64,000 bases of DNA from Oikopleura dioica (taxonomy: Eukaryota > Animalia > Chordata): NCBI GenBank assembly GCA_907165135.1, contig OU015566.1, positions 8,928,001 to 8,992,000 on the forward strand, given 5' to 3'. A program made the translations under genes and the position numbers. Shown in pieces: positions 17,965 through 42,600 of the stretch (positions are counted from its first letter, which is position 1; each line of letters begins with the position of its first letter). A model generated the notes under the pieces. It worked only from the letters and a program-made list of their open reading frames with translations, ran no database searches and was not told the origin of the DNA.

Positions 17965-18726
17965 AGCGAGTGTTAAATGCGCCAAGTGGAGAGCCGCCAA
18001 AGGTCAACTGCACGCACTGAAGTTCTTTCACTTCAATTAAGGAACTCTTCGAGAGACTAGCTCAAGAAATGACTTTGAGAATGAAATTATTTTTTAAAAA
18101 TTAGCGTTCTGATGTCAAAAAGAAACGTGTTTTCGCCAGCGTGCGCGTTTCTAAAGACAGGAGAAATCTCACCTGTGGTCCAACTCTCGTTACACAACTC
18201 AATAAGAAACATCTTCTGGACATATCTTTCATCCCTTTTTCTCGCGCTTTGCCACGTTGATAAAGCCATGAAATTTGAAAGAGCGTTCACAGAAATCGGC
18301 GAAACCGCGCTTCAACCGCGAAGTGACGACTTACAGTCAAATTATGGACTAACAATGGGCATGTACTTGCGTAACTCTTTCCTCCTTACGAATCCGCTCT
18401 ACAGTAATAAAGCTACAGAGTTGCGAAAGTTGTTTATCAAATTACGGGTCGCTAAAAATTGAACTTGTTGGCATTTGCGAACGTCAGGTAGATGATCACC
18501 AATTTGAGCCGTAACATCTATCACGTTTCACACTACGCAGTTGCGTCTAAAGCATACAAAGCTGAGAAGAATCTATCAAAACAAGCTATCGTTCTATGAA
18601 GAGTGTATCCATCAAGGGATGAAAATTGAAAGATTAAACTTTGTGGAAAAATTAAAAAAATATTTTTCTTTACAAAAACTTGACGACGGTAGTTATGGCT
18701 TCGAAAGAAAAATTGAGATCAAATAA
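17965..18726 (+). CDS. Unknown multi-exon gene convergent with neurexin; 5' end unresolved
   Basis: Short 40-50 nt introns (including GC..AG gcatgt...ctacag and GT..AG gtagat...acgcag) join open frames RVLNAPSGEPPK, ELFERLAQE, RSDVKKKRVF, MKFERAFTEIG, VIKLQSCESC, LRLKHTK...KIEIK*. No recognised domain. Confidence 0.4.
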
Positions 18727-18874
18727 TGAAAATTTATTAAACGAGGCTTTATCCTTGTGTGAGTTGGTTTTGATCAAGTGGCGCTGTCTTTGGAGCATTT
18801 CTTCGTTTTTGGCAGCAAGTGTGATTTGAAGCAGAGTTGTGCGATTCGGAATAAATAAGGGAAAAAGCTAATCT

Positions 18875-21800
18875 TTAGACGTAAAATTCAGAGTTCTTTC
18901 CAGGCGGTTGATTTCCTTTTTGAGGTTTTGGCTTTATTCCCGGCACGACGGCTGGGATGTCGTCTTTTGAATGCCTCCTGAACCTGATAGAGTTGCTTTT
19001 CGGTCTTTTTTTTCTTTTCTCTTTACCTGTAGAAGACAAGTCCCGCGACGATTAGGACGAGCAAGACTCCGGCTGCAAAGGCAACTGTGAAAAATGTTGT
19101 TGTTAGAGTAGACGAGTCCGGGTCTTTGGTCATCGTCGCGTTCGAAAATCCAGCAGAGTCGTTCATCGCCAGGCTATAACTCGTGATTTCTTGGACAAGC
19201 GCCGCCGTCGTTGTTGTTGGCGGCTGCGTAGTAGATGTTGGGATTCTAAAACAAAAGTTCAGCTGAAGATAAAATCGATAGAAGTCCTACTTTGGGTCGA
19301 AATTGCTCTCAATTGCAGAGACAGTTACGTCTCCAATTATCCGCGCGGCCTTTGATTCGCCTTTTTGGACGGCTTCGAGGACTTTGAATTTGTTGAAATT
19401 GACCCCGAGGATTTTTCCTTTGAACGGATCCAGGATCACATCATTGTCGGTGAGTCGCCCGCCGATCTGTATTTCGGACTGCGAATTGAAAACAGAGTAT
19501 CTAAGAGCGAATAAATCACATGAATTAAATCTCGTAGAATACTTGTTATTTCCTGACGATGTGACAGCAGGTAGATCATCGACAATCATTGTTGCATTTG
19601 ATTCAACTCTTTTGATTCGTATTTGATGATATTGCCCATCGTCGATTCTCCTGTCAATTGATAATAAAACAGACTTTCTGAAAATATCTTACTTCGGATA
19701 TTTCATGGTCGTTTCTCCGCCACCAATATCATAAACAAACTTAGGCCTTCCATCCTCCTACAATGAAATTAAAGCGAAGAGAAAAGAAATTCTCCAATCT
19801 GACTCTCGATGAAGGTTCACGAGAGGAGATTGAGTGTTTATCACTGTGTGTGCTATAAAAGTGATAGTAATAAGAAATGAAATGAACACTTACAAGCAGC
19901 AGAGCCATGGTGTCAGGTGACTTAGTTAGCATGGATGAGAGAACTCTGACAAAAGCTAGTCACGCTCCTGTCGTGTTAACGACTTCGTAACACGGCACGA
20001 TGGAAATATTTTGTGTTTAAAGTGCGTTAAAGTCCGGTACGTTTCTAAGTAAGTTAAGGATCCCTAGCTCAGGATAGTACCAGAAGGTTGCGAAGTGATA
20101 ACGTGAACGATAAACTGGTCCTCTGCGGTGGTGCCGTCGCGCTGCTCGTTCTTGTAGGGCGAAGGCACGTTCCCGAGTCCTCGAGGCGGAAAGAAACAAG
20201 CCCCGAGGCAGACGAGAAGTTCGCCACGCAAGTTAGACTATCATCTATCGACAATGCTGAACAAAGTGTAAAAATCCGCCTTTTCTTTCATTTTTTCGGC
20301 GTCGCAAAGTAAGCGAAAACAAGCCGAATCTCTTCCATGATTTCAAAATTTTGAAATCACTCTCAAAATTCGTTTTTTCTCGCTCACTCTAAGAGTAGTG
20401 TAGTTTAGTAATATAAATAGGCTGTTTATATCGCGTTGGTTACAACAGAGCTTAAAACAATATTCTTGTTGGAAAACCAGAGCCAGCATTGTCGAGAGCA
20501 AAATCTAAGAGGCTAATTGAGAGGCTAGTTTGGGCATGCGACAGAGTAGAAATATTATTCTCAATATAAAGGATGAGAAAACGATATAGACATAAAGCTA
20601 TATCGTTGTCATAATATTTCGTCAAATCAACACCAGAGGAGGGTGATTGTAACTGTAACCTGTCCTGAACTGTATATTGTTATTGAATATACTCACCGAA
20701 CTGCCTCTGGTGGTGATTTTTGGAATGTTTGTGAATGAGAGGTTACGGGTTAACTGGAGAAGGGGTGAGTTGATGAAGGCGATTTTGCTCGGGAATGCTG
20801 ACTTACGAGAGTGAGCTTGAGGGCGTCGTTAGTGCCACTTGATGCGACAGACAGAATTGTCTGCACGGTCGCCACGGTCCCGGTTTCGTTTTTTGGCGAA
20901 CGGAGTCCGGAGATCGGCTCGTTGTTAGTGACTTGGGCCGTGTCCTTATCGGGCACCTGGATCAGTACAGAGATCAGGTCCGTGGAGAGCGAATCCTCCG
21001 AAGGCAGCGGCACGAGCACGACTGCCCTGGAAAACTCGCCGCGCCCGCCAACCACTAAACATAGAAATCGTGTTTACCTCAGAAGAAAATTCAAAATGAT
21101 AGAATTTTAAATTTTCGTCGAAAGAAATAAAATGGCTGCACTTGGTGCGCGACTGTAGGTAAACTGCGGAGTGATTGATTTGATTTATTCAAGTTACTTT
21201 GTCAAATATGGATGAAAAAATGATGGCGCAAAATGGTCATACAATATTCAACAAAATAATATAAAAAATCAGGAAGATCGCCGGGAACTGCGCTCGCGCG
21301 CTGCCGCCTAAAATTCCGTAGTAATCAGATTTCTATTTTTTCGCGCTTTGGCGGAAGAAATAATATTTTCCCACTTTTAGGTTTGCCCATTTTCGAAAAG
21401 GTTTTCCAGTGAAAAAATATTGATTAATTAAATTTTACTATTTTTGCTTAAAATTTAGCAAAATTTCGTTCGAAATTGCTCATGCGGCGCACTTACTCTC
21501 CGCTCTAAGTTTTGAGTATTCTAAAAATTAACGAAATCGTAAATCGTCACTCGGAAATTTCGAGCTGAAAAAAGCAAGCTGATATTTACGTTTTGTGCAG
21601 GTATCACCAATAAAAGAAGTTCCAGAGCAATCGCATTTGGGCCCATCCCAGCCTTGTCTGCAAAGTCCACCATTTTTGCAGTAAAATGCACTGATCCGTG
21701 TTCGATTTTAGCTTTTAAATAACTTTTGTTTATTCTATCGATATTAGTCTAAATCCAAGCGATGAAATATGCATAGATTCCCTCTTGTAATAATAAAATA

Positions 21801-24800
21801 GACAAGTTGGCGGCTAATCGCGCTCATAATCTCCCATATGTCGTTTTTTGACAAGAGACATATGGCTTCTCTTGAAAAAATCTTATTGTCTTATTGATTA
21901 TTTTCCAGCATTCGAGCACTTCCTGCATGCGACCAGTGGCCCGCTGCATCCTTTTTCAATCTGTCGCGCTCGTCGTTCAAGGAACATCGTGTTCCCGTTG
22001 AGTTTTATTTTACCGACGCAGCCGAGGAAACCTTCTGTTGACGTTACAGGTGAGCCCGTGGTTCCCCAGAGGTATTTTGGCAGTCCACCGACGAGGACCG
22101 CACTGTTATCCAGAAAGCCTTCCCATTTTCCTTTTGGCCCAATGTTACGTAAAGGCAATTGCTCGGCTTGGCTGCGTCCTGGTAACTCGGTTAATTTTCG
22201 CCTGTATATACAGACAAACCCAAATGCATTAATAATTGGCTCGCTTTTAAGAACGAGTCTACTGTGCTAGTGAAACTTGTTAAAAATTGACCGTTCCTTT
22301 ATCAATATTGATATCCCACGCTGAAGAGCGGTCCCCAACAGAGCCTTCTAGATCAAAGTTCAAAAATTTGAAAATCAATGAAGGATTTCAGTTTGAAATC
22401 AAGGAAAAAACATTTTTGAACTTTTCCTGTTACGTCTATTTGAATCGAGTGCCACTCGTTGTCGCTTATGACTTTATTCGAAGTCATCACTTGCGGCGCT
22501 CTTCTTTTTAATTTCCAGATCCAATGAACTCTTCCATTCACGATTTCCAGGACGGCCCAGCTAACATTCGGGTCTTTTGCTGTCAAAAGGTTCAGCAAAT
22601 TAGGAGCGGACAGTGTCCAAATAGCCATGTTGCTAGAGAATCTGACTATGCGCGCGAATGTTGTATTCTGCAGTAAATATGCAGAGGATGTATAAATGCG
22701 CGACCTTTGCCTTTCTTATTGATCTGGTCGAGGATGAGCGTTCGTTCATCCTTATCAATAATTTAGCAAACTAAAATATATGTTGCATCAATACCTGATT
22801 AACAAGATCAGCTGGCCCCGCCCAAAATATTAATCCGTCTTCTTCTGTCGTTCTAAACAACAATCATTGTCTGTAAGAGAAATGACTTTTTTCGCGTCTG
22901 TACCTGAGCTCAATCTGGACTTGATATTTCCGCGAGCTTTTCCAAAGAATATCTGCGCGAATTTTGCTGTCAGTTCGTTGAAACGCTTCACGAGTCAGAA
23001 ACGTAAACGGATTTGACGGATTCGGCATCTTTGAAGGACCAACAAATGTAAGCAAGAATAAATATTTATTTGAATATGTCGGATTCCGGTCTTAAATAAT
23101 ACTAAATTTCTATTAGGCGACCGCATTTCGAGCATTCAATAATTGAATCAAGGAAAATCATTTATAATGAATCAAAACATCGCTCAAGAGCTGAAACAGC
23201 TCTGACAAGATGAGCTGAAAACATGGCGAAGTCCTTCTAGACTAACAACAGGCTTGTAGTGATTGGGGTAGTCTTTCACGTGGTCCGGAATTTTTAAAAT
23301 AGCCAGATTTGGTGAGAGGGATGACCAGGTTCGTGAGGACTAGGTTCGTGGGAGCCATGTTGGAAAAAATGGTTCGTTGGACTAGGTTCGTGGAATTCGG
23401 TTTTTATATGTATTTTTTGTATCTTCACCATTTTCGGTCAGTAAAGGAAATGGGTTGTTGACTAGGTTCGAGGGACAAGGTTCGTGACTTTTTTAATAGT
23501 AAAGATTTTTGGTAAGTAAAGGAAATGGCTTGCTGACTAGGCTCATGAGACTAGGTTCGTGAAGACTAGGTTCGTGAAGACTAGGTTCGTGAAGACTAGG
23601 TTCGTGAAGACTAGGTTCGTGAAGACTAGGTTCGTGGAATTTTACTCATTTGGGATATAAAATCCCACATTTTGCTTATTCAAAACCCACGAACCTAGTC
23701 CCACGAACTCTTTCCTTGTTAAATATTTACCATTAAAAAAGTCACGAACTTCGTCCCACGAACCAAGTCAACAACCCATTTCCTTTACTGACCGAAAATC
23801 TTTACTATTTAAAAACTCACGAACCTAGTCCCACGAACCTAGTCAGCAACCCATTTCCATAACTGCCCCAAAATAAAGCCCCATTTCAATACTCTGGCAG
23901 AACCTACCACGAACCTTGTCCCACGAACCTAGTCCTCACGAACCTTGTCGTCATTCCCGATTTTGTTTGAATTGAGCTTGTTTGAATTAAGTTTAGGAAA
24001 ATATTTGTCCATAAGGTTTCTAAGACATATCTTATATTGAAGAAAATAGCTTCATCAGTTGATCCATTCCTGAGTATTGATCTTTGGCCGGTTAGGCATC
24101 GAACAAGTAAAACCGTCCGGTAGCGACTTTTGTTGATCTTGCGCCGCTCGGCATTGTTCGATTAGTTCGTTTCCGTTGAATTTTAGCTTTTGGATCGTCC
24201 CATTAAATTGTGGCTTGGATTTGCCGGCTCCGATGACAAAGTTTTGAAGCTTCATCTTCTCCACCATCGTTGAGACCTCAACCTTGCTATCGCAGTTGGG
24301 CACCTTTTGGTCGTTGCTTGTCCGCAATTCAAGAGTGGCCACTCTTTTGTCACGCCTAGCGAAAGTCTCCATATGATTATTTCAACGCGCCCTAAGTACA
24401 TCCTTCTAATAAGCCGTGGCTTCGAGGGGCCTCATTTGTCAATCGGGCATATTATTTCAAACCCCGATTAACTGTTTAGATACAGTACTGATCGAATAAA
24501 CACCGAAGTATGAATATCGAGTGACATTTAAATGCCGAGTGAGACAAGCAAAAAACAGACATTCTTACTCAACCAAAATTGAGGTTTACAAATAAGGCAT
24601 TATAAATTGCATACATAAAAGGTTGGTGGAGACTTTTTCCTGATCATAATGGTCCGCCACTGGCCATCGTCCAAGTCCCTGCCGCACTCGATCGTTTTGG
24701 CGGCACCATCCATTCTGATCTCGAGTCGGAGACGGCCGTTGATAATTTCTTAGTGAATAATAAATTACATAAGATCAAAATTATCAATTTTCCAACCGCG

Positions 24801-27800
24801 AAGTTCATCGCGGTAAAAATCGGGATCAAGATGTTTTTGCAAAATTAAAATATCGTAGATAGAAATTACGAAATAATGAGTAAATATGAAAGATCTGTCG
24901 CTACTCGCGAATGAAAATACCTAGTCGGTAACCATATTGTCCGTTGTCTCCCGATGCAGAAATCAAAACTCCGTTCCCAGAATTGGAAGAGAATCGTAGT
25001 GATATAACATCTTCTAGTGTTTTATTTACGAACACCAAATGATTAAGATTCAATAAAAAATATTCTTCTATCATAAGAAATAAGAATAAAGTAGTTTTAG
25101 TTTGCGAATGAAACACTATCCTGTTTCTGACGTGATTCCCTCTCCAGGAAACAGCACCTTGACTTCGTTGTTTCTTCCAAATATCTCGTAATTAGCTAAA
25201 ATGCTCAGAATTGTCCAAACTCTCATTGTTCCTGTTTAAAATTCGATAATTGTATGCAGGCTCTTTGAAAATTGCAAGGGTCTTTTGTAAATCAGCGAGA
25301 GAAAAAAGGAGGACGCAAGCGCGCGTCGCCCTACGCGCTTTCCGAAGATGGATGCCCAGCGAACCTAGTGCGCCACCAATTTTTATTTTTTTTCTGCGAG
25401 GGGTTGAAATTCATTCCCCTGAGGGCCTGTCATAGTTAATAAGACTAACTGTATATTGAGGCAGCTTTGGGCAACCGTGTTTTGTCCGACAAAATAATCA
25501 AAACGTCACGACATGTTAATTTAACTGTTAATTATTATTCGCGTCAGAATCCTTCTCAGTAGAATGAACGCGTTGTTGTTAACAATGTTCAACAAAATAA
25601 ACGTTTTCTCATCAAATGAATTATCTATATGATTTATTAGTAACCATAATAATAATTTAACAATGATATGGTATAAATTTATTGGTTTTACATTCATTTT
25701 GAGATTAAAGACTAACCCTGCCACGAATTCCATAAAGTACCGTCAGCCGTAATTATTTAATGTACGAAAATCATGATAATCTACCTTTGAGTTCGCACCG
25801 GCGACCATTCCAATCCGCAGCTTCTCCCGAACAGCTGCAGGTGAACCCTGCGTAAGGCGAGGGCATGCACTTGGCCCTATTCAGACAAGGATCATTTGCA
25901 CAATCCGTAGATCGACAAGTCTGTGGTGGCTTCGCTTCACAGCATCCTTCTTCCGTTCCATAGGCCCGCTGAGCATATCTTGTGACTGAGAGAGTTCAGA
26001 ATTTCCGTAAGGGCGAAAGGCCTTGAAGAAAATCGTGAACTCTGACTTCGATCGCCTTCTCTCCAAAAGTGACATCTTTGATGCATCCCATAAAGCCTAT
26101 TTGCGCAAAAGCGAGACGCAATTCCGATGGAAAGATGAAGCTTGAAGGAACGACGGCAGTATCAAAACCTTTTAGTAATTGATTTTCAATCTTACAAGTT
26201 TTAATTCTACTCTTTAAAAACCATAAAATTATGTTCGTCTGTACATGTCTAGTTTTTCTTCCGCGCCAAGAATGAAACATTCAATCCAAAATTTTCTAAG
26301 AACCCAGATTAAATCAGAATCCCCTAAGATCTCGAATATATTTATAACAAAATAATGAAAACCGTGCCTCCCAAATAGACCTCTCCGATGCTACCAAGTC
26401 CGCCGATGTTCATCGTGCTAGTATCACCATCAATCGTTACTTTCGCACCAGAGTTATCAGCTAGGATCTTCAATAAGTGCCAGTCCCCGTCATGTAGCCT
26501 CGATGCTTTTGACTGGCTTATTTGGAGATTTCCTTTCGCATCTCTGAAAACGGCGCTAAGTCTTCCTTTGTAGAGTTCAACTGATGCAAATGATCCCTTG
26601 GGAGTATACGCTCCGGAAGTGATGAGAAGAAGGCCTTCGGATTTGAGTGTTCTTTGATGAGAAGCTTATCAATCGGCTTTGACCTGTTGAAATCAAGGAG
26701 GACTCACACTGGAGGCAAGAATGATAAATTTTAAATTTGAATGCTTCTTTCCTGAAAAAGAAGCTGATTGAGAATGAACCAGGGTTTTTGACGAGAACTT
26801 GGGACTGTAACTTCACGAAGCTCTCAGACGTCACAAACGACAAAGTCTTTGCCGTTGTTAGCCTGCAACCAATGGTCGGTTTTCCCTTTAGAACAAAGTT
26901 GCGTTCTTGGCGCTGGTCATTTAGAATCTCATCCGCCCATTTCGAAAGTGTTAGCGGAAGTCCTCCTTCTTTGGTGCTGTACTGGATGTTCTTGAGGCAT
27001 CCGACGAACCTATCTGTCACAGTATTGCCTGGCAGTTTTCTGATCACGTTTTCGGGAGCTCCCGCAACGTAAATCTTGTTGGCAATTTTCAAGTTTGCGC
27101 CATCGATGATTTTTGCATCCATTGTTTGGTTGATATTGTCGACTTGGATCATAACCTAAAGCGATGAAAATTCAAGAAATCCTCAATGAACGAATCAACA
27201 CGGCGATTATACCTGCATGATAACAGCCTGGCTTATCTACGCAAAGATTGGAAAAATGTTAGTAAAGCTTTGATTTTTGGGATGAGTACTTGGAGACATA
27301 GATGAGATCAAGATATTTGACAGCTTACCTCGTTCAGTTTCCGATTGACTCTGAGAGTATGCCAGTTTCCATCGGCGAATGATTTGATGCCAGTCTCAGA
27401 GCTGAGAGATACCGACAACAGATTTTGATAAACAAAGATGTTGAACCTTGAGGTTGGCTTAGAATTAATCGAAAGTTACTAGCACAAGTGTAGAACGAGT
27501 TCAAGCGCATTCGGAACGTTGTTCGTTAGATTAATAATAAAAATAAGCCATTCCGAAGATCACCGTCGATCAAAGCCAAGTTCAGGTAGTCTGTTCCCGT
27601 TCCTGCATGCAAGATAAGACCGGTCTGTGGTAGGATTTTTACATGATGATATTTTAAGGAAATTTTCTAGAGAACAAATAACCCGATCCTGTCGCTGAGT
27701 CTTGAATGAGACTAAAAGTGAGTCTCTGAAACTTGTAATCGGAGTGTCTCTCGCTAGTGAGTACTCCATCCAGTCGATTCCTGTGAAACTTTGTACGGCA

Positions 27801-29400
27801 TCGCCGTCAACTAGAACGCAGATTACAATAATTCAATGCTGTTAAACACAGATCAAGCTGATATTTATATGAAACAGAAATCATTCCATCATTTCGAGAG
27901 CATTACAAATAAATCTCAAATGATTGAGTGGTCGGTTAACTATCTGCGATATGTTTAGTACTGGGCTGGGTATATATAGATGAAGTAAATATCCGCATCA
28001 CAACTTTGGATATTTGAAGCAATCGGTACGAGGCTCGTACAACGAGCTAAAACTTTCGGTGCCTTACACTTTGATATTTGCCGTGCAAGACGAGCGGGAC
28101 GTCCTTAAAAAATTGGTGCAAAATCAAAAGAGTGATTAAGAAAAAAATAGTGCTAATAAGGTGGTTATATGAGTTGTGACTGATGCTACTAATTCTAAGT
28201 GAAAAATAGTAAATAGATTAGGAAGACAAGAATCGTAAATTTTTAATTTTAACCTGTTTCATCGTTTTCATCTTTGATCGTATTAATATTTAATTTCTGA
28301 GATCAATGCCAGAAATACCTTTTTGACAGTAATCACCGCTGTAGCCCACTGGACATGTGCATTTTGGCGGCGCACCTTGCTTACACACGCCTCGATTTTG
28401 GCATGGGTTGTAGAGACAGGCATCTTAAAGAAACTTTTGAGGACCATAAAACTGTTTATTGTTCTTATCGTTTGATGTTAGCAAATCAAAATGCACATAA
28501 GCCGCTAAGCAGCCGTTGCAGCATTAGAACAATTTTTTACCCCGACATGACGATCGGGTACTTTTATCAAAATTCTCACCAGTGATACTCAGTTTCTTGA
28601 CACAATTCGATGGACTCATCATGTCTGGAAAGACAGAAATACTTTTTCGGGTTCTCTAAAACCGTAATTTGACAGAAGGCTGTCCTCATTACGGTATGTC
28701 TATGCTATATTCTTACGCACCAGAGAATACCGTACGTATCAGTTGAATTTATTATGTGATGGGTTGAAAGGAAAGTCCATCCAAAATGTACATTATCTCG
28801 AGTCGAGTGAACCCTTCCTGTTGATCTGAAATTCCCTGAGGATGCCCGAGAAAGAGTCGCGCTTATATACTTTCGGGTAGACAGTATCTGACAATTTCTT
28901 TGTTTCTGGAAAGCCACCGAGGTAAACATCAGACTTTTTGGGCTGAGCTAAATGTACTGTGTGTATTTAATTTAAATCATGCATGGAAGTTTTAGGTGCG
29001 CCTTAAAAGGCCTGAATAATAAATTACGGGCGCGGTTAATCTACAGAGATTCTATGGTTAGTTTCTTACGGGGATAATATTGCATTATTTGATTTTTTCC
29101 CTTGATAATAAGCTATTCTATAATTCAAGAAAGGAAGGAAAATATTGTGTCGTTCAAGGTCGATCCTGAATGAAATAACAATTATGCATTCTTAGCTAGA
29201 ATCAGAATCAACAAGTGGTTTTGCCCAGCCATGCCTTGATATCAATAGGTCGGTCGGTGATGATGCTTTTTGAGTCGCCCTCATCGGTCGTCAACGAAAT
29301 GGAATTGTCATCGAAGGTGATGACAGCCACATGAACGGCCTTGTCCAGTACAAAGCCACCCTTGATCATTTGTATTCTCTTCTTGTCGGCTTTTGTTGCG
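18875..29400 (-). pseudogene. NRXN: 5'-truncated duplicate of the alpha-neurexin-like gene (second half of LNS1 to the PDZ tail)
   Basis: Same exons as 31046-41650, but it begins inside the LNS1 intron, 122 nt from the duplication junction, so it lacks the signal peptide and first LNS1 exon. It has a 1-nt deletion (CCC vs CCCC at 20172-20174) in one LNS6 exon. Pseudogene status is uncertain; it could be an allelic or assembly copy. Confidence 0.6.
23318..23958. mobile_element. Foldback-like gactaggttcgtgaa element in a neurexin intron (left copy)
   Basis: Same terminal, subterminal (ccatttcaatactctggcagaacc) and central (tttactcatttgg...tcccacatttt) sequences as 12210-12904; 15-bp unit tandem run at about 23550-23635. 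Confidence 0.8.
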
Positions 29401-30135
29401 CTTAGCAAATCATATGCACAAAAAATTGACGTCAAATAAATTTTAAGACGTCGTGCTCCTGTACTTTTTCGTATTATAGAGTCTGCTTCTTGAAAAGTTC
29501 AGTTGCGTAGAAAAGATTCGACTGCCGCGTTTCCGTGATTCGTTTTTCTAAATTTCTAAATTGATCAAAAAATAATAAATCAAAATACAGTTCACCCCAG
29601 AGTTCGACTGTGGCTGGGTTTCCGCTTGATTCAACAAAATAAAATAATCCCTGGCATCTTCAAAATCAACGACAAGGCAAAATGAGAGTTTTTGCATTAC
29701 TAAGCAAACCAATAATTGAATAGTAGTTTCGTTTTACGAAAGTGCGAAATTTTATAAGAAAAAAGCAAGTAAAGCTTTTGAACGGAAGCGAAGAATCAAG
29801 AGCTTTGACAGCTTTTGTCATAAACCTTGTCTTCAAGCGGTCGCCTCCGCCCTATTTACAAGATATTCAGAATATCCAATGCACAATATCTTGGACTGGC
29901 AGTATTTAAATTGATTCTCCGCGGGCGGATGCAAATTCTGCAATTTCTCGAATCTACGCGGGGCTAGGCTGCTGTCCTTCCAATCCCTTTTCCCGGGAAA
30001 GAAGATTTTTTTTAAAGTTTTACTTGATTGAAAAGTTCGATATTTTTCACGTTGCTGGTTATAATGTTCCGCTAAAACAAAGAAGAGCCAGTAACTTTAC
30101 ATCGGGCGCAATTAACTTCGCTATTTAGCTCATTT

Positions 30136-30897
30136 AGCGAGTGTTAAATGCGCCAAGTGGAGAGCCGCCAAAGGTCAACTGCACGCACTGAAGTTCTTTC
30201 ACTTCAATTAAGGAACTCTTCGAGAGACTAGCTCAAGAAATGACTTTGAGAATGAAATTATTTTTTAAAAATTAGCGTTCTGATGTCAAAAAGAAACGTG
30301 TTTTCGCCAGCGTGCGCGTTTCTAAAGACAGGAGAAATCTCACCTGTGGTCCAACTCTCGTTACACAACTCAATAAGAAACATCTTCTGGACATATCTTT
30401 CATCCCTTTTTCTCGCGCTTTGCCACGTTGATAAAGCCATGAGATTTGAAAGAGCGTTCACAGAAATCGGCGAAACCGCGCTTCAACCGCGAAGTGACGA
30501 CTTACAGTCAAATTATGGACTAACAATGGGCATGTACTTGCGTAACTCTTTCCTCCTTACGAATCCGCTCTACAGTAATAAAGCTACAGAGTTGCGAAAG
30601 TTGTTTATCAAATTACGGGTCGCTAAAAATTGAACTTGTTGGCATTTGCGAACGTCAGGTAGATGATCACCAATTTGAGCCGTAACATCTATCACGTTTC
30701 ACACTACGCAGTTGCGTCTAAAGCATACAAAGCTGAGAAGAATCTATCAAAACAAGCTATCGTTCTATGAAGAGTGTATCCATCAAGGGATGAAAATTGA
30801 AAGATTAAACTTTGTGGAAAAATTAAAAAAATATTTTTCTTTACAAAAACTTGACGACGGTAGTTATGGCTTCGAAAGAAAAATTGAGATCAAATAA
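30136..30897 (+). CDS. Duplicate of the unknown gene at 17965-18726
   Basis: Near-identical sequence at offset 12171; one visible codon change (MKF to MRF). Confidence 0.35.
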
Positions 30898-31045
30898 TGA
30901 AAATTTATTAAACGAGGCTTTATCCTTGTGTGAGTTGGTTTTGATCAAGTGGCGCTGTCTTTGGAGCATTTCTTCGTTTTTGGCAGCAAGTGTGATTTGA
31001 AGCAGAGTTGTGCGATTCGGAATAAATAAGGGAAAAAGCTAATCT

Positions 31046-34000
31046 TTAGACGTAAAATTCAGAGTTCTTTCCAGGCGGTTGATTTCCTTTTTGAGGTTTT
31101 GGCTTTATTCCCGGCACGACGGCTGGGATGTCGTCTTTTGAATGCCTCCTGAACCTGATAGAGTTGCTTTTCGGTCTTTTTTTTCTTTTCTCTTTACCTG
31201 TAGAAGACAAGTCCCGCGACGATTAGGACGAGCAAGACTCCGGCTGCAAAGGCAACTGTGAAAAATGTTGTTGTTAGAGTAGACGAGTCCGGGTCTTTGG
31301 TCATCGTCGCGTTCGAAAATCCAGCAGAGTCGTTCATCGCCAGGCTATAACTCGTGATTTCTTGGACAAGCGCCGCCGTCGTTGTTGTTGGCGGCTGCGT
31401 AGTAGATGTTGGGATTCTAAAACAAAAGTTCAGCTGAAGATAAAATCGATAGAAGTCCTACTTTGGGTCGAAATTGCTCTCAATTGCAGAGACAGTTACG
31501 TCTCCAATTATCCGCGCGGCCTTTGATTCGCCTTTTTGGACGGCTTCGAGGACTTTGAATTTGTTGAAATTGACCCCGAGGATTTTTCCTTTGAACGGAT
31601 CCAGGATCACATCATTGTCGGTGAGTCGCCCGCCGATCTGTATTTCGGACTGCGAATTGAAAACAGAGTATCTAAGAGCGAATAAATCACATGAATTAAA
31701 TCTCGTAGAATACTTGTTATTTCCTGACGATGTGACAGCAGGTAGATCATCGACAATCATTGTTGCATTTGATTCAACTCTTTTGATTCGTATTTGATGA
31801 TATTGCCCATCGTCGATTCTCCTGTCAATTGATAATAAAACAGACTTTCTGAAAATATCTTACTTCGGATATTTCATGGTCGTTTCTCCGCCACCAATAT
31901 CATAAACAAACTTAGGCCTTCCATCCTCCTACAATGAAATTAAAGCGAAGAGAAAAGAAATTCTCCAATCTGACTCTCGATGAAGGTTCACGAGAGGAGA
32001 TTGAGTGTTTATCACTGTGTGTGCTATAAAAGTGATAGTAATAAGAAATGAAATGAACACTTACAAGCAGCAGAGCCATGGTGTCAGGTGACTTAGTTAG
32101 CATGGATGAGAGAACTCTGACAAAAGCTAGTCACGCTCCTGTCGTGTTAACGACTTCGTAACACGGCACGATGGAAATATTTTGTGTTTAAAGTGCGTTA
32201 AAGTCCGGTACGTTTCTAAGTAAGTTAAGGATCCCTAGCTCAGGATAGTACCAGAAGGTTGCGAAGTGATAACGTGAACGATAAACTGGTCCTCTGCGGT
32301 GGTGCCGTCGCGCTGCTCGTTCTTGTAGGGCGAAGGCACGTTCCCCGAGTCCTCGAGGCGGAAAGAAACAAGCCCCGAGGCAGACGAGAAGTTCGCCACG
32401 CAAGTTAGACTATCATCTATCGACAATGCTGAACAAAGTGTAAAAATCCGCCTTTTCTTTCATTTTTTCGGCGTCGCAAAGTAAGCGAAAACAAGCCTAA
32501 TCTCTTCCATGATTTCAAAATTTTGAAATCACTCTCAAAATTCGTTTTTTTTCGCTCACTCTACGAGTAGTGTAGTTTAGTAATATAAATAGGCTGTTTA
32601 TATCGCGTTGGTTACAACAGAGCTTAAAACAATATTCTTGTTGGAAAACCAGAGCCAGCATTGTCGAGAGCAAAATCTAAGAGGCTAATTGAGAGGCTAG
32701 TTTGGGCATGCGACAGAGTTGAAATATTATTCTCAATATAAAGGATGAGAAAACGATATAGACATAAAGCTATATCGTTGTCATAATATTTCGTCAAATC
32801 AACACCAGAGGAGGGTGATTGTAACTGTAACCTGTCCTGAACTGTATATTGTTATTGAATATACTCACCGAACTGCCTCTGGTGGTGATTTTTGGAATGT
32901 TTGTGAATGAGAGGTTACGGGTTAACTGGAGAAGGGGTGAGTTGATGAAGGCGATTTTGCTCGGGAATGCTGACTTACGAGAGTGAGCTTGAGGGCGTCG
33001 TTAGTGCCACTTGATGCGACAGACAGAATGGTCTGCACGGTCGCCACGGTCCCGGTTTCGTTTTTTGGCGAACGGAGTCCGGAGATCGGCTCGGTGTTAG
33101 TGACTTGGGCCGTGTCCTTATCGGGCACCTGGATCAGTACAGAGATCAGGTCCGTGGAGAGCGAATCCTCCGAAGGCAGCGGCACGAGCACCACTGCCCT
33201 GGAAAACTCGCCGCGCCCGCCAACCACTAAACATAGAAATCGTGTTTACCTCAGAAGAAAATTCAAAATGTTAGAATTTTAAATTTTCGTCAAAAGAAAT
33301 ATAATGGCTGCACTTGGTGCGCGACTGTAGGTAAACTGCGGAGTGATTGATTTGATTTATTCAAGTTACTTTGTCAAATATGGATGAAAAAATGATGGCG
33401 CAAAATGGTCATACAATATTTAACAAAATAATATAAAAAATCAGGAAGATCGCCGGGAACTGCGCTCGCGCGCTGCCGCCTAAAATTCCGTAGTAATCAG
33501 ATTTCTATTTTTTTCGCGCTTTGGCGGAAGAAATAATATTTTCCCACTTTTAGGTTTGCCCATTTTCGAAAAGGTTTTCCAGTGACAAAATATTGATTAA
33601 TTAAATTTCACTATTTTTGCTTAAAATTTAGCAAAATTTCGTTCGAAATTGCTCATGCGGCGCACTTACTCTCCGCTCTAAGTTTTGAGTATTCTAAAAA
33701 TTAACGAAATCGTAAATCGTCACTCGGAAATTTCGAGCTGAAAAAAGCAAGCTGATATTTACGTTTTGTGCAGGTATCACCAATAAAAGAAGTTCCAGAG
33801 CAATCGCATTTTGGCCCATCCCAGCCTTGTCTGCAAAGTCCACCATTTTTGCAGTAAAATGCACTGATCCGTGTTCGATTTTAGCTTTTAAATAACTTTT
33901 GTTTATTCTATCGATATTAGTCTAAATCCAAGCGATAAAATATGCATAGATTCCCTCTTGTAATAATAAAATAGACAAGTTGGCGGCTAATCGCGCTCAT

Positions 34001-37000
34001 AATCTCCCATATGTCGTTTTTTGACAAGAGACATATGGCTTCTCTTGAAAAAAATCTTACTGTCTTATTGATTATTTTCCAGCATTCGAGCACTTCCTGC
34101 ATGCGACCAGTGGCCCGCTGCATCCTTTTTGAATCTGTCGCGCTCGTCGTTCAAGGAACATCGTGTTCCCGTTGAGTTGTATTTTACCGACGCAGCCGAG
34201 GAAACCTTCTGTTGACGTTACAGGTGAGCCCGTGGTTCCCCAGAGGTATTTTGGCAGTCCACCGACGAGGACCGCACTGTTGTCCAGAAAGCCTTCCCAT
34301 TTTCCTTTTGGCCCAATGTTTCGTAAAGGCAATTGCTCGGCTTGGCTGCGTCCTGGTATCTCGGTTAATTTTCGCCTGTATATATATTTACAGACATACA
34401 CAAATGCATTAATTATTGGCTCGTTTTTAAGAACGAGTCTACTGTGCTAGTGAAACTTGTTAAATTTTGACCGTTCCTTTATCAATATTGATATCCCAGG
34501 CTGAAGAGCGGTCCCCAACAGAGCCTTCTAGATCCGAATTCAAAAATTTGAAAATTCAAGGAGGATTTCAGTTTGAAATCAAGGAGGAGAAAACATTTTT
34601 GAACATTTCCTGTTACGTCTATTTGAATTGAGTGCCAATCGTTGTCGCTTATGACTTTATTTGAAGTCATCACTTGCGGCGCTCTTCTTTTTAATTTCCA
34701 AATCCAATGAACTCTTCCATTCACGATTTCCAGGATGGCCCAGCTAACATTCGGGTCTTTTGCTGTCAAAAGGTTCAGCGAATTAGCAGCGGACAGTGTC
34801 CAAATAGGCATGTTTTTAGAGAATCTGACTTTGCGCGCGAATGTTCTACAATGGTATTCTGCAGTAAATATGCAGAGGATATATAAATGCGCGACCTTTG
34901 CCTTTCTTATTGATCTGGTCGAGGATGAGCGTTCGTTCATCCTTATCAATTATTTAGCAAACTAAAATATATGTTGCATCAATACCTGATTAACAAGATC
35001 AGCTGGCCCCGCCCAAAATATTAATCCGTCTTCTTCTGTCGTTCTAAACAACAATCATTGTCTGTAAGAGAAATGACTTATCGCGTCTGTACCTGAGCTC
35101 AATCTGAACTTGATACTTCCGCGAGCTTTTCCAAAGAATATCTGCGCGGATTTTGCTGTCAGTTCGTTGAAATGCTTCACGAGTCAGAAACGTAAACGGA
35201 TTTGACGGATTTGGCATCTTTGAAGGACCAACAAATTTAAGCAAGTATAAATATTTATTTGAATATGTCAGATTCCGGTCTTAAATAATACTAAATTACT
35301 ATTAGGCGACCGCATTTCGAGCATTCAATAATTAAATCAAGGAAAATCATTTATAATGAATCAAAACATCGCTCAAGAGCTGAAACAGCTCTGACAAGAT
35401 GAGCTGAAAACACGGCGAAGTCCTTCTAGATAAACAACAGGCTTGTCCTGAATGGGGCAGTCTTTCACGTGGTCCGGAATTTTTAAAATAGCCAGATTTG
35501 GTGAGAGGGGTGACCAGTTTCTGAGGACTAGGTTCGTTAGATTAAGTTCGTGGATGCCATGTTGGAAAATATGCTTCGTTGGACTAGGTTCGTGGAATTT
35601 TGGTTTCATATGTTTTTTTTGTATCTTCACCATTTTCGACCAGTAAAGGAAATGGGCTGTTGACTTGGTTCGTGGGAATAGGTTCGTGAGTTTTTAAATA
35701 GTAAAGATTTTCGGTCAGTAAAGGAAATGGGTTGTTGACTAGGTTCGTGGGACTAGGTTCGTGACTTTTTAGTAGTAAATATTTTCGGTAAGTACAGGAA
35801 ATGGCTTGTTGACTAGGTTCGTGAGACTAGGTTCGTGTAGACTAGGTTCGTGAGACTAGGTTCGTGAGACTAGGTTTGTAGAGACTAGGTTTGTGAGACT
35901 AGGTTCGTGAAGACTAGGTTCGTGAAGACTAGGTTCGTGAGACTAGGTTTGTGAAATTTTACTCATTTGGGATATAAAATCCCACATTTTGCTTATTCAA
36001 AACCCACGAACCTAGTCCCACGAACTCTTTCCTTGTTAAATATTTACCATTAAAAAAGTCACGAACGTAGTCAATAACCTATTTCCATTACTGACCGAAA
36101 ATCTGTTCCATTTAAAAACTCACGAAGTTCGTGAGTCACGAACCTAGTCCAACGAACCTAGTCAACAACCCATTTCCTTTACTGCCCCAAAATATAGCCC
36201 CATTTCAATACTCTGGCAGAACCCACCACGAACATTGTCCCGCGAACCTAGTCCTCACGAACCTTGTCGTGATTCCCGATTTTGTTTGAATTGAGCTTGT
36301 TTGAATTTCGTTGAGGAAAATATTTGTCCATAACTTATGGACCATAAGGTTTCTAAGACATGTCTTATATTGAAGAAAATAGCTTCATCAGTTGATCCAT
36401 TCCTGAGTATTGATCTTTGGCCGGTTAGGCATCGAACAAGTGAAACCGTCCGGCAGCGACTTTTGTTGATCTTGCGCCGCTCGGCATTGTTCGATTAGCT
36501 CGTTTCCGTTGAATTTTAGCTTTTGGATCGTCCCATTAAATTGTGGCTTGGATTTGCCGGCTCCGATGACAAAGTTTTGAAGCTTCATCTTCTCCACCAT
36601 CGTTGAGACCTCAACCTTGCTATCGCAGTTGGGCACCTTTTGGTCGTTGCTTGTCCGCAATTCAAGAGTGGCCACTCTTTTGTCACGCCTAGCGAAAGTC
36701 TCCATATGATTATTTCAACGCGCCCTAAGTACATCCTTCTAATAAGCCGTGGCTTCGAGGGGCCTCATTTGTCAATCGGGCATATTATTTCAAACCCCGA
36801 TTAACTGTTTAGATACAGTACTGATCGAATAAACACCGAATAATGAATATCGAGTGACATTTAAATGCAGAGTGAGACAAGCAAAAAACAGACATTCTTA
36901 CTCAACCAAAATTGAGGTTTACAAATAAGGCATTATAAATTGCATACATAAAAGGTTGGTGGAGACTTTTTCCTGATCATAATGGTCCGCCACTGGCCAT

Positions 37001-40000
37001 CGTCCAAGTCCCTGCCGCACTCGATCGTTTTGGCGGCACCATCCATTCTGATCTCGAGTCGGAGACGGCCGTTGATAATTTCTTAGTGAATAATAAATTA
37101 CAAAAGAACAAAATTATCAATTTTCCAGCCACGAAGTTCATCGCGGTAACAAATCGGGATCAAGATGTTTTTTGCGAAGTTAAAATAGCGTAGATAGAAA
37201 TTACAAAGCAATGAGTAAATATGAAATATCTGTCGCGAATGAGAATACCTAGTCGATAACCATCTTGTCCGTTGTCTCCCGATGCAGAAATCAAAACTCC
37301 GTTCCCAGAATTGGAAGAGAATCGTAGTGATATAACATCTTCTTCGTGTTTTATTTACGAACACCAAATCATAAAGGTTCAATAAGAAAACATTCTTCTA
37401 TCATCAGAAATACGAATAAAGTAATTTAAATTTGTGAATAAAACACTATCCTGTTTCAGAAGTAATTCCCTCTCCAGGAAACAGCACCTTCACTTCATTG
37501 TTTCTTCCAAATATCTCGTAATTAGCTAAAATGCTCAGAATTGTCCAAACTCTCATTGTTCCTGTTTAAAATTCGATAATTCTATGCAGGCTCTTTGAAA
37601 ATTGCAAGGGTCTATTGTAAATCAGCGAGAAAAAAAAGGAGGACGCAAGCGCGCGTCGCCCTAAGCGCTTTCCGAAGATGGATGCCCAGCGAACCTAGTG
37701 CGCCACCAATTTTTATTTTTTTCTGCGAGGGGTTGAAATTCATTCCCCTGAGGGCCTGCCATAGTTAATAAGACTAACTGTATATTGAGGCAGCTTCGGG
37801 CAACCGTGTTTTAGTCCGACAAAATAATCAAAACGTCACGACATGTTAATTTAACTGTAAATTATTATTCGCGTCAGAATCCTTCTCTGTAGAATGAACG
37901 CGTTTCGTTCAGAGTTATCAATATGATTAACATTTTTTTTTATTTTTTCTCTCTAGCGTCTCATCTTTTTATTTTGAAAAAAAACATAATTACAATTTAA
38001 AATTGGCATCATATCAATTTATTTTTCTCCTAACTGTGTGAACTAATTGTTTAACCCTCTCACCCTGCCCAACGTGTACCGTCTATTTAATTTAAAACAT
38101 AAATATACCTTTGAGTTCACAGCGACGACCATTCCAGTCCGCCGCTTCTCCCGAACAACTGCAGGTGAACCCTGCGTAAGGCGAGGGCATGCACTTCGCC
38201 CTATTCAGACAAGGATCATTTGCACAATCTGTAGATCGACAAGTCTGTGGTGGCTTCGCTTCACAGCATCCTTCTTCAGTTCCATAGGCCCGTTGAGCAT
38301 ATCTTGTGACTAAGAGAGTTCAGAATTTCCGTAAGGGCAAAAGGCCTTGAAGAAAATCGTGAACTCTGACTTCGATCGCCTTCTCTCCGAGTGTGACATC
38401 CTTGATGCATCCCATGAAGCCTATTTGCGCAAAAGCGAGACGCAATTCCGATGGAAAGATGAAGCTTGACCTGACAACGGCAGTATCAAAACCTTTTAGT
38501 AATTGATTTTCAATCTAAGTTGTTTAAAGTCTATTTAAAATTAAAATAACAAGCAAAAATCTGTTTCTCCTAAGGTCTCGAATAATAACATAAAAGATCT
38601 CAAATTAAAGAAAACCGTGCCTCCCAGGTAGACCTCTCCGATGCTGCCAAGTCCGCCGATGTTCATCGTGCTAGTATCGCCATCAATCGTTACTTTCGCC
38701 CCAGAGTTATCAGCTAAGATCTTCAATAAGTGCCAGTCGCCATCATGTAGCCTCGACGCTTTTGACTGGCTAATTTGGAGATTTCCTTTCGCATCTCTGA
38801 AGACGGCGCTTAGTCTTCCTTTGTAGAGTTCGACTGATGCAAATGATCCCTTGGGAGTATACGCTCCGGAAGTGATGAGAAGAAGGCCTTCGGATTTGAG
38901 TGTTCTTTGATGAGAAGCTTATCAATCGACTTTGACCTGTGGAAATAAAGGAGGACTCACACTGGAGACAAGAATAATCAATTTTAAATTTCAAGGCTTC
39001 TTTCCTGAAAAAGAAGCTGATTGAGAATGAACCAGGGTTTTTGACGAGAACTTGGGACTGTAACTTCACAAAACTCTCAGGCGTCACAAATGACAAAGTC
39101 TTTGCCGTTGTAAGCCTGCAACCAATGGTCGGCTTTCCCTTGAGAACAAAGTTGCGTTCTTGGCGCTGGTCATTTAGAATCTCATCCGCCCATTTCGAAA
39201 GTGTTAGCGGAAGTCCTCCCTCTTTGGTGCTGTACTGGATGTTCTTGAGGCATCCGACGAACCTATCTGTCACGGTATTGCCTGGCAGTTTTCTGATCAC
39301 GTTTTCGGGAGCTCCCGCAACGTAAATCTTGTTGGCAATTTTCAAGTTTGCGCCATCGATGATCTTTGCATCCATAGTTTGGTTGATATTGTCGACTTGG
39401 ATCATAACCTTAAGTGATGAAAATTCAAGAAATCCCCAATCAACGAATCAACACGGCGATTATACCTGCATGATAACAGCCTGGCTTATCTACGCAAAGA
39501 TTGGAAAAAATGTTAGTAAAGCTTTGATTTTTGGGGTAAGTACTTAGAGACATAGATGAGATCAAGTTTATTTGGCAGCTTACCTCGTTTAGTTTCCGAT
39601 TGACTCTGAGAGTATGCCAGTTTCCATCGGCAAATGATTTGATGCCAGTCTCAGAGCTCAGAGATACCGACAACAGATTTTGATAAACAAAGATGTTGAA
39701 CCTTGAGGTTGGCTTAGAATTAATCGAAAGTTACTGGCACAAGTGTAGAACGGGTTCAAACGCACTCAGAACGTTGTTCGTTAGATTAATAATAAAATTA
39801 AGCCATTCCGAAGATCACCGTCTATCAAAGCCAAGTTCAGGTAGTCTGTTCCCGTTCCTGCATGCAAGATAAGACCGGTCTGCGATAGGATCTTTACATG
39901 ATGATATTTTTAGAAAATTTTCTAGAGAACAAATAACCCGATCCTGTCGCTGAGTCTTGAATGAGACTAAAAGTGAGTCTCTGAAACTTGTAATGGGACT

Positions 40001-42600
40001 GTCCCTCGCTAGTGAGTACTCCATCCAGTCGATTCCTGTGAAACTTTGTACGGCATCGCCGTCAACTAGAACGCAGATTACAATAATTCAATGCTGTTAA
40101 ACACAGATCAAGCTGATATTTATATGAAACAGAAATCATTCCATCATTTCGAGAGCATTACAAATAAATCTCAAATGATTGAGTGGTCGGTTAACTATCT
40201 ACGGTATGTTTAGTACAGGGCTGGGTATATATAGATGAAGTAAATATCCGCATCACAACTTTGGATATTTGAAGCAATCGGTACGAGGCTCGTACTACGA
40301 GCTGAAACTTTCGGTGCCTTACACTTTGATATTTGCCGTGCAAGACGAGCGGGACGTCCTTAAAAATTGGTGCAAAAGCAAAAGAGTGATTAAGAAAAAA
40401 ATAGTGCTAATAAGGTGGTTATATGAGTTGTGACTGATGCTACTAATTCTAAGTGAAAAATAGTAAATAGATTAGGAAGACAAGAATCGTAAATTTTTAA
40501 TTTTAACCTGTTTCATCGTTTTCATCTTTGATCGTATTAATATTTAAATTCTGAGATCAATGCCAGAAATACCTTTTTGACAGTAATCACCGCTGTAGCC
40601 CACTGGACATGTGCATTTTGGCGGCGCACCTTGCTTACACACGCCTCGATTTTGGCATGGGTTGTAGAGACAGGCATCTTAAAGAAACTTTTGAGGACCA
40701 TAAAACTGTTTATTGTTCTTATCGTTTGATGTTAGCAAATCAAAATGCACATAAGCCGCTAAGCAGCCGTTGCAGCATTAGAACAATTTTTTTACCCCGA
40801 CATGACGATCGGGTACTTTTATCAAAATTCTCACCAGTGATACTCAGTTTCTTGACACAATTCGATGGACTCATCATGTCTGGAAAGACAGAAATACTTT
40901 TTCGGGTTCTCTAAAACCGTAATTTGACAGAAGGCTGTCCTCATTACGGTATGTCTATGCTATATTCTTACGAGAGAATACCGTACGTATCAGTTGAATT
41001 TATTATGTGATGGGTTGAAAGGAAAGTCCATCCAAAATGTACATTATCTCGAGTCGAGTGAACCCTTCCTGTTGATCTGAAATTCCCTGAGGATGCCCGA
41101 GAATGAGTCGCGCTTATATACTTTTGGGTAGACAGTATCTGACAATTTCTTTGTTTCTGGAAAGCCACCGATGTAAACATCAGACTATTTGGGCTGAGCT
41201 AAATGTACTGTGTGTATTTATTTTAAATCATGCATGGAAGTTTTAGGTGCGCCTTAAAAAGGCCTGAATAATAAATTACGGGCGCGGTTAATCTACAGAG
41301 ATTCTATGGTTAGTTTCTTACGGGGATAATATTGCATTATTTGATTTTCTCCCTTGATAATAAGCTATTCTATAATTCAAGAAAGGAAGGAAAATATTGT
41401 GTCGTTCAAGGTCGATCCTGAATGAAATAACAATTATGCATTTTTAGCTAGAATCAGAATCAACAAGTGGCTTTACCCAGCCATGCCTTGATATCAATAG
41501 GTCGGTCAGTGATGATGCTTTTTGAGTCGCCCTCGTCGGTCGTCAACGAAATGGAATTGTCATCGAAGGTGATGACAGCCACATGAACGGCCTTGTCCAG
41601 TACAAAGCCACCCTTGATCATTTGTATTCTCTTCTTGTCGGCTTTTGTTGCGCTTAGCAAATCATATGCTCGAAAAATTGACGTCAAATAAATTTTAAGA
41701 CGTCGTGCTCCTGTACTTTTTCGTATTAAAGCGTCTGCTTCTTGAAAAGTTCAGTTGCGTAGAAAAGATTCGACAGTAAGTGGGCACTCGATATTTAAGT
41801 ATTCTTGAAGATTTATCGGAACTTTAAGAACGTGCAGAACTATCAAAATTGAATATTTATGGCACTACAGAAGACCTGATCCTGGATCAATGGTCTTGTC
41901 TGCTGCTTTTTACTGTGGATTTTGAAAATAATGGAGTATTATTTCAATTGAAATGAAGTACCGGTATTCTTGATAAGACTTTTTCGTCCCTTGAGAATAA
42001 AATGGATGTCCACAAGGCACTTGAATAATCGCCTTTACTGTAAAATATGTATGAAAACTTTTATTTATTTCAATGACTGAGAAACAATTTAGGGGGAATA
42101 CAAATTGTAGTTGATTAATGGCTTATTTTAAGCACTCAGACATCCCTTTCTGAATGCTCCTTACTTCCCCTACTCAAAGCAACATTTTGCTTAAATAAAA
42201 AAGAAATAGTAATGACGTTAATTATCATATAAGCGTGGCTTGAACTTCAAGAAGTAGCTGACCCGCAGAAATGATGAGGGAGACAAACTGGTCAACGGCA
42301 TTATCTATAAACGGAACCGTAAGCAAAATTTCCCTAAATCCCTATCTTACCAAAGTAAAGAAGAAATATTGAAGCTGAACTGGTCGATTTTCTTGGAAAT
42401 ACATTTGGAAGATCTACATATTGAAATTTCATTGTGATAGTTTTGAGCGAGTCGCTGTTGAATCTGTTCGTTGTGTAAGAAAGGGTTTGTTTTGAGCATC
42501 CTTCTTTCGATTTGAAATTGATGCGTTCAGGGTCATGCATCCTTGACAGATAAAATAAATTCTTTAGGCATTCAAATCCAGTTCCTTCTAGCTGCCATGA
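31046..42600 (-). CDS. NRXN: Alpha-neurexin-like protein (6 LNS/laminin-G + 3 EGF, TM, PDZ-binding tail); 5' end not located
   Basis: Domain order and motifs match alpha-neurexin: LNS1 (SIFLLYF.DQFVSLIISAGQL), EGF1 ACLYNPCQNRGVC, LNS2 (SFKTQRQ.TGLILHAGTGTDYLNLAL, FADGNWHTLRVNR, FVGCLKNIQY), LNS3 (LSFVTPESFVKL, GFMGCIKDV), EGF2, LNS4 (TEDVISLRF, LDDGQWRTIMI), LNS5 (EGFLGCVG), EGF3 CKNGGLCRQGWDGPKCDCSGTSF, LNS6 (IDDGQYHQIRI, VFNSQSEIQIGG, PFKGKILG), Thr-rich stalk, TM VAFAAGVLLVLIVAGLVFY, tail ending KNSEFYV*. Confidence 0.9.
35507..36277. mobile_element. Foldback-like gactaggttcgtga element in a neurexin intron (right copy)
   Basis: Paralogous position to 23318-23958 but longer, with more and more varied units. 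Confidence 0.8.

Follow-up and report, generated by a model that had tools for sequence, protein, structure and literature searches.

Vertebrate neurexins vary their sixth LNS (laminin G) domain, LNS6, through the SS4 cassette and through beta promoters. SS4, a cassette of 30 residues, is inserted into a loop belonging to the C-terminal half of this domain. The neurexin gene of Oikopleura dioica described here lies in a window of 64,000 nucleotides (nt), which is the whole stretch of DNA analysed (GCA_907165135.1, contig OU015566.1, positions 8,928,001 to 8,992,000), and appears to encode the first half of LNS6 twice, once in an exon termed A and once in the exon pair B1 and B2. As with SS4, the ligand-binding rim of LNS6 would be changed by splicing within the same protein family, but here the whole N-terminal half of LNS6 would be exchanged, not a cassette.

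A second relevant system is Drosophila Neurexin IV, whose exons 3 and 4 are mutually exclusive and encode a discoidin domain. We know of no shared docking element for Neurexin IV. The likeness consists in a member of the neurexin superfamily in which two alternative homologous exons vary an extracellular binding domain, in Neurexin IV in a cell-type-specific manner. In contrast to the present gene, Neurexin IV belongs to the Caspr branch and is not a true neurexin, the varied domain is discoidin and not LNS6, and control is exerted by an RNA-binding protein at intron 3. Its splicing is HOW-dependent, according to a statement cited in PMC3919595. The honeybee neurexin shows cassette-type and truncating variants, with no exclusive pair (PMC2570956), and extensive splicing appears to be exclusive to vertebrate neurexins according to a review (PMC12665717). 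Literature searches for neurexin or Oikopleura together with mutually exclusive exons, and for Oikopleura neurexin, returned no description of the arrangement; the initial annotation of this DNA likewise knew of no description of such a half-domain swap.

The reading favoured here, which we consider probable, is that two old, frame-locked exon sets give rise to two neurexins differing in the first half of LNS6, through a choice governed by RNA structure. The two sets would derive from an old tandem duplication. Each messenger RNA (mRNA) would take one of them, resulting in two neurexins with a common C-terminal half of LNS6, and most of the residues corresponding to the rim that contacts neuroligin and binds calcium would lie in the exchanged half. 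The choice would probably be made by RNA structure, in which a conserved intron element is predicted to pair after the donor of A and at the acceptor of B1. This element could block the frame-breaking splice from A to B1 or set the exon sets in competition.

The gene is read on the minus strand as an exon series encoding LNS1, EGF, LNS2, LNS3, EGF, LNS4, LNS5, EGF3, and LNS6. The exons were read one by one, and Pfam matched Laminin_G and EGF on the neurexin pieces tested. Six LNS and three EGF domains, interleaved, correspond to the layout of alpha-neurexins. A transmembrane segment is present (TTFFTVAFAAGVLLVLIVAGLVFYR), and the C-terminus reads ...GKNSEFYV followed by a stop, EFYV being a PDZ-binding-type motif like EYYV. 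As judged from its sequence, the gene is thus a single alpha-neurexin with six LNS domains, three EGF domains, a transmembrane segment, and a C-terminal EFYV. When the common half of the last LNS domain was compared with solved structures in the PDB, the top 18 matches were all neurexin-1 or neurexin-2, alpha or beta; the best stretch aligns with residues 1148-1237 of 3r05, which is LNS6 of neurexin-1. All coordinates given are window positions, and the main finding refers to the right of two tandem copies of the gene, in which the following exons, all on the minus strand, are arranged.

33763..33863, minus strand: EGF3 exon, ending in phase 1, 5' end approximate (direct reading, Pfam EGF)
32979..33226, minus strand: exon set A, 248 nt, phase 1 to 0, AG acceptor, GTAAGT donor
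32242..32428, minus strand: exon B1, 187 nt, first part of set B
32065..32116, minus strand: exon B2, 52 nt, ending in phase 0, with the Asp equivalent to the calcium ligand
31864..31928, minus strand: first common LNS6 exon (EDGRPKFVYDIGGGETTMKYP), starting in phase 0 (direct reading)
31821-31714 and 31671-31462, minus strand: two more common LNS6 exons with a 42-nt intron between them (Pfam Laminin_G_2, positions 42-125)

The EGF3 exon ends at 33763 with ...GDTCTK and one further base, leaving phase 1, while the first common exon begins at 31928 with EDGRPKFVYDIGG. B1 and B2 jointly run from phase 1 to phase 0, as A does alone. The initial annotation had placed two such exon sets between EGF3 and the common exon, and their coordinates and phases were confirmed by direct reading. 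On translation, EGF3 joined to A and the common exons, and EGF3 joined to B and the common exons, each yield an open frame through LNS6. Several stop codons are encountered if A and B are used together or if both are skipped. The four combinations give an identical outcome in all four lineages tested, so that the earlier statement that joining A to B breaks the frame holds beyond the window. Exactly one set is required per mRNA, because both or neither breaks the reading frame.

Both sets are recognisable as the N-terminal half of LNS6. Full-length composites containing either A or B match a profile built from 17 metazoan neurexin LNS6 domains nearly end to end, with E-values of 1e-39 to 1e-48. 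When the A and B families were aligned with the canonical N-terminal half using hhalign, the matches likewise ran end to end (A, E 4e-6; B, E 5.7e-6). Scored against the profile of the N-terminal half, the versions from the distant relative L007, introduced below, reach 23 bits for A and 30 bits for B (shuffle maximum 8), and those of the window reach 3.4 bits for A and 13.9 bits for B. B is nearer to the canonical neurexin sequence than A (TAEDQFIVHVITS versus TRADRLAIGFST). A carries a variable loop insert of roughly 25 amino acids, situated between the third and fourth conserved strands; the insert of B is found one loop earlier. The Asp equivalent to D137 of neurexin-1beta is present in all eight sequences compared (A and B from four lineages). 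The alignment by eye on which the two versions had first been assigned to this half-domain, with a retained Asp and loop inserts at different places, is thereby borne out. Neither A nor B1 alone matched anything in Pfam, and when the A or B1 families were run as profiles against the PDB, only chance matches appeared. The neuroligin interface of neurexin-1beta comprises N103, P106, S107, T108, R109, S132, L135, and the calcium ligand D137 (PMC2570956), and all eight of these residues fall in the half encoded by A or B.

Related loci were found by protein searches. A search with exon A led to a reading frame of 71% identity in JGI metagenomes, the contigs of which are referred to as L001. The common half led to L009 (NCBI GCA_977009715.1), L007, L010, L011, and L012. 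L001 and L009 are other lineages of the Oikopleura dioica complex. L007 is a TARA metagenome scaffold of 12.8 kilobases (kb) from a distant appendicularian, approximately 47-57% identical in the common half, and L012 is a relative of L007 on a contig that starts downstream of the expected place of A. L010 begins inside A. The order and phases of A, B1, B2, and the common exons are preserved in all related loci except L012, which carries B1, B2, and the common exons. The check for orthologues called for by the initial annotation was therefore positive in L001, L009, and the distant L007.

In the four lineages, A measures 248/233/245/200 nt, B1 187/190/190/172 nt, and B2 52 nt. Orthologues of exon A are 69-71% identical, every insertion or deletion is a multiple of three, and the AG and GTAAGT splice sites are kept in all lineages. 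In close lineages, amino acid identity amounts to 87-92% for B1 and 100% for B2; the EGF3 protein is 100% identical in L001, L009, and L011. Compared with L007, A shows 35% identity and is no less conserved than B1 (33%). The tandem duplication that produced A and B would predate the split of the O. dioica complex from the distant appendicularian.

Selection was assessed from nonsynonymous (dN) and synonymous (dS) divergence by the method of Nei and Gojobori, comparing the window with L001 and L009. For exon A, dN/dS is 0.21 (p 6e-6) and 0.48 (p 0.015), with a dS of 0.44-0.54. Set B (B1 and B2 together) shows a dN/dS of 0.05-0.12 (0.055 and 0.089 against L001 and L009) and a dS of 0.52. The common half has a dN/dS of 0.05-0.09, and dS in EGF3 plus the common half is 1.3-1.7. 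In the second clade (L007 versus L012), B has a dN/dS of 0.048 and a dS of 0.26, compared with a dS of 2.2 in the common half. Both sets are under purifying selection. A dN/dS near 1, which had been named as the sign of a decayed duplicate, was looked for and not found; the values are well below 1 in both sets. Synonymous divergence is approximately three-fold lower in both sets than in constitutive exons; the proportion of synonymous changes in A and B is below that of constitutive exons (p 1e-3 to 2e-6), and the second clade behaves likewise. Such lowered synonymous divergence is frequently seen in alternative exons under regulation.

Conserved islands occur in the introns flanking A and B; further downstream, the constitutive introns measure 42 nt. 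Only two intronic sequences are common to the window and L007, namely an element of 32 nt between A and B1 and the 13 bases after the B2 donor. The latter (GTAAGTGTTCATT, 32064-32052) are identical at L007:7874-7886. The element and the sites predicted to pair with it are as follows; in the motifs, a slash marks the splice junction.

32646..32677, minus strand: 32-nt element (GATTTTGCTCTCGACAATGCTGGCTCTGGTTT) in the A-B1 intron, candidate docking site, kept in seven of seven loci
32953..32972, minus strand: site +7 to +26 after the donor of A (CAGCATTCCCGAGCAAAATC), complementary to the element
32420..32431, minus strand: 3' splice site of B1 with the first 9 exon bases (CAG/CATTGTCGA), perfect complement of the 3' half of the element over 12 base pairs (bp)

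The element is kept even in L007 and L012, the remaining intron sequence of which cannot be aligned. Its first 10 bases are, in the window, L001, and L009, perfectly complementary to +17..+26 after the donor of A, and its bases 11-22 are perfectly complementary to CAG/CATTGTCGA. Ensemble folding of the whole segment gives both helices a probability of 0.82-1.0, with the 10-bp helix at approximately 1 in three lineages. Alternatively, bases 16-22 of the element may pair with +7..+13 after the donor of A. The pairings at the A flank and at B1 partly use the same bases of the element and would therefore be able to compete. The element of L007 differs at three positions and forms an uninterrupted 11-bp helix with the donor flank of A at the same place. 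In this helix, two pairs have changed in a compensatory manner, one change preserves a wobble, and two former mismatches are paired, all within a comparison of two independent clades. Furthermore, the L007 element matches a bipartite site inside B1 that is identical in L012. An Rfam search of 31800-34200 returned nothing relevant. A single element tied to the donor of A and to the acceptor of B1 would be compatible with an RNA-structure switch, which we put forward as a hypothesis.

The closest precedents for such a switch are the docking and selector sequences in clusters of mutually exclusive exons of insects (Dscam1 exon 6, 14-3-3 xi, and Mhc), which likewise comprise a conserved intronic element complementary to sites beside each alternative exon. 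In contrast to these, only two variants are present here and the element lies between them. A further difference is that pairing with the donor flank of A and with the B1 acceptor itself would suggest masking and not activation.

Upstream of A, the EGF3-A intron contains approximately 290 nt (33700-33411) that are 85-90% identical to L001 and L009, which is above the synonymous sites of the flanking exons. A stretch of 25 nt in this intron (33694-33670), located between TTTTTAG and GTAAGT, resembles a micro-exon. Its inclusion breaks the frame; it might act as a decoy exon, as a poison exon, or in regulation.

Set B is itself interrupted by an unusual intron.

32117..32241, minus strand: B1-B2 intron, non-canonical GA-AG, with ends that pair

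The B1 donor reads CT/GAGCTAGG and is not GT. No junction other than CT/GA...CAG/A maintains the frame in all lineages; the donor of L007 is AA. At the ends of the intron, +1..+7 (GAGCTAG) pair with -14..-8 (CTAGCTT) over 7 bp at -9.4 to -10.1 kcal/mol, compared with -2.9 to -4.0 kcal/mol for the end pairing of five neighbouring GT introns. L007 retains a 6-bp clamp with altered sequence (AAGCTA with TAGCTT). Taken alone, the shuffle test of the clamp is not significant (about 0.15). The end-pairing clamp would explain the 22-nt perfectly conserved block around the B1 donor. O. dioica has an unusually high frequency of GA-AG introns, the usual context of which is AG/GAA (PMC7072748). A GT-AG alternative, with donor and acceptor each placed 10 nt upstream, keeps the frame within the O. 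dioica complex but was rejected, being out of frame or interrupted by a stop in L007 and having an acceptor without a pyrimidine tract. A U12-type intron was also rejected owing to the misfit of its donor motif. The B1-B2 intron is thus likely to be of the GA-AG type.

Transcript evidence was sought in RNA runs and protein databases. The RNA runs filed under the species name carry L009-type sequence (the NETSLIPLTVQ variant of exon A) and do not represent the lineage of the window. Reads covering B2 extend into the introns on either side, and matches are confined to conserved islands. A protein search with the common half found genomic reading frames and one 115-residue 'merc' fragment (P0044) from another species, in which the sequence before EDGRPKL looks B-like. 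The protein matches L006 and L013 are genomic.

Several observations weigh against two alternative neurexins chosen by RNA structure. Four RNA runs, searched at 93% likeness, yielded 16 partial unspliced reads and no joints, albeit from a divergent lineage. The protein database search with exon A returned genomic reading frames only, and that with B1 returned nothing. The similarity between A and B is not significant (hhalign E 0.15), so that their common origin rests on their position and on their match to the same half-domain. Exon A has changed faster than B, chiefly within the loop of variable length. With regard to RNA structure, the helix energies are not exceptional compared with shuffles over long introns, and covariation rests on just two independent clades. 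The GA donor of B1 has a context unlike the usual AG/GAA (PMC7072748). Since A and B were unseen in mature RNA, exclusivity rests on the frame-lock. The half-domain swap claimed by the initial annotation is accordingly supported in part: homology, frame-lock, splice sites, and selection speak strongly for it, while the joints EGF3-A, EGF3-B1, A-common, and B2-common were unobserved. The splicing of both sets in vivo, their exclusivity, the direction of the switch, and any difference in ligand binding are inferred.

The alternative that survives best is that A is a conserved coding exon used rarely or unproductively, for example together with B in a decay-based control of dosage, leaving effectively only the B protein. 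It would fit the observations that B is much nearer to canonical neurexin and far more conserved, that the transcript-derived fragment P0044 is B-like, and that transcripts with A were not encountered. An open frame is not required of a poison exon, but in A 66-82 codons stay open across the lineages. Its indels are in frame, its dN/dS is below 1, its sequence is LNS-like, and the calcium-binding Asp is retained in a distant species. We therefore regard rare or unproductive use of A as unlikely.

It is more improbable still that A owes its conservation chiefly to a regulatory role as RNA in the intron preceding B, with its apparent coding signal being secondary. The flank of A is part of the conserved helix, and dS in A between L001 and L009 is only 0.05, compared with 0.5 in constitutive exons. 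Set against this, it is specifically in this frame that substitutions are biased towards synonymous sites, and the A version of L007 matches the profile of the LNS N-terminal half with 23 bits, compared with a shuffle maximum of 5.7. In addition, consensus AG and GTAAGT sites stand at phase-compatible positions in all lineages.

A and B could also belong to different transcript classes from separate promoters, one alpha-like and one beta-like. Vertebrate beta-neurexins start in the intron before LNS6, and the EGF3-A intron contains several conserved islands. Separate promoters would not account for the A and B1 acceptors, both of which are conserved and in the phase left by EGF3. Moreover, a simple scan of the EGF3-A and A-B1 introns found no exon with an ATG, a signal-peptide-like stretch, and a phase-1 donor. 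The 32-nt element was considered as a beta-like first exon and rejected, as its internal ATG is not conserved in L007 and L012. Overall, separate promoters seem very unlikely.

Nearly all of the neurexin gene is included in a head-to-tail duplication of 12.2 kb, with the right copy at 29522-41774 and the left copy at 17351-29522, which are 94-98% identical. The left copy contains the same set of exons.

19894..21054, minus strand: left-copy arrangement, with A at 21054-20807, B1 at 20256-20071, and B2 at 19945-19894

In the left copy, B1 measures 186 nt owing to a change from GGGG (32346-32343 in the right copy) to GGG (20173-20171), and consequently the B path is frameshifted and the A path is open. 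L001 and L009 are without the duplication; there, the 3' end of the gene continues into sequence matching 17338-17072 of the window. The left copy lacks an upstream region distinct from that of the gene array. The duplication is either specific to the lineage of the window or a (haplotype) assembly artefact, and the deletion in the G homopolymer of the left B1 may be a sequencing error or may mark a real A-only paralogue. The initial annotation had cited the left copy as a second instance of the arrangement. A, B1, and B2 are indeed present, but B1 is frameshifted, and the absence of the duplication from L001 and L009 means that the left copy is not independent evidence. Between the two gene copies, the LNS4-LNS5 introns (35300-35900 and 23250-23650) differ in the length of a tandem repeat composed of HEPS/HEPSL units in one frame.

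That one set is a decaying duplicate or pseudo-exon, to which the frameshift in the left B1 and the variable length of the A loop might point, is hardly credible in view of a dN/dS well below 1 for both sets, the retention of frame and splice sites where introns are saturated, including in a species approximately 50% identical in the common half, and the confinement of the frameshift to a G homopolymer in a lineage-specific extra copy.

Elsewhere in the gene, the intron at the position corresponding to SS4 (31713-31672, between the equivalents of PAGRQ and LTIFNSQ) is 42 nt long and contains no cassette; it is similar in L001 and L009 and absent in L007. In the window, L001, and L009, this intron can be read through in frame with no stop, and a stop occurs in L010. 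Because of this stop, its retention is probably not a conserved coding variant. Between LNS5 and EGF3, the intron at 34029-33951 contains a 79-nt island approximately 90% identical to L001.

The favoured reading of two frame-locked sets can be extended, more tentatively, to its possible function. In appendicularians, a bistable switch, in which the 32-nt element pairs either with the donor flank of A or with the acceptor or body of B1, might set the exchange of half of LNS6 so that each transcript receives a single set, replacing variation of the SS4 type, with the two forms being made in different neurons and meeting different postsynaptic partners; we consider this possible, though doubtful. 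The ligand-specificity "code" at the synapse suggested by the initial annotation would likewise be conceivable.

Neurexins are central organisers of synapses, and LNS6 binds neuroligins and several other partners. Splice diversity of neurexins is generally held to be a vertebrate speciality of small cassettes (PMC12665717). If the exchange described here is true, there would be a second means of varying the LNS6 surface, one that is structurally more drastic and has long been kept in the sister group of vertebrates. The conserved intron element would be a compact and mutable candidate for enforcing an exclusive choice. The Oikopleura nervous system consists of approximately a hundred neurons, and this small number would allow isoform use to be mapped cell by cell.

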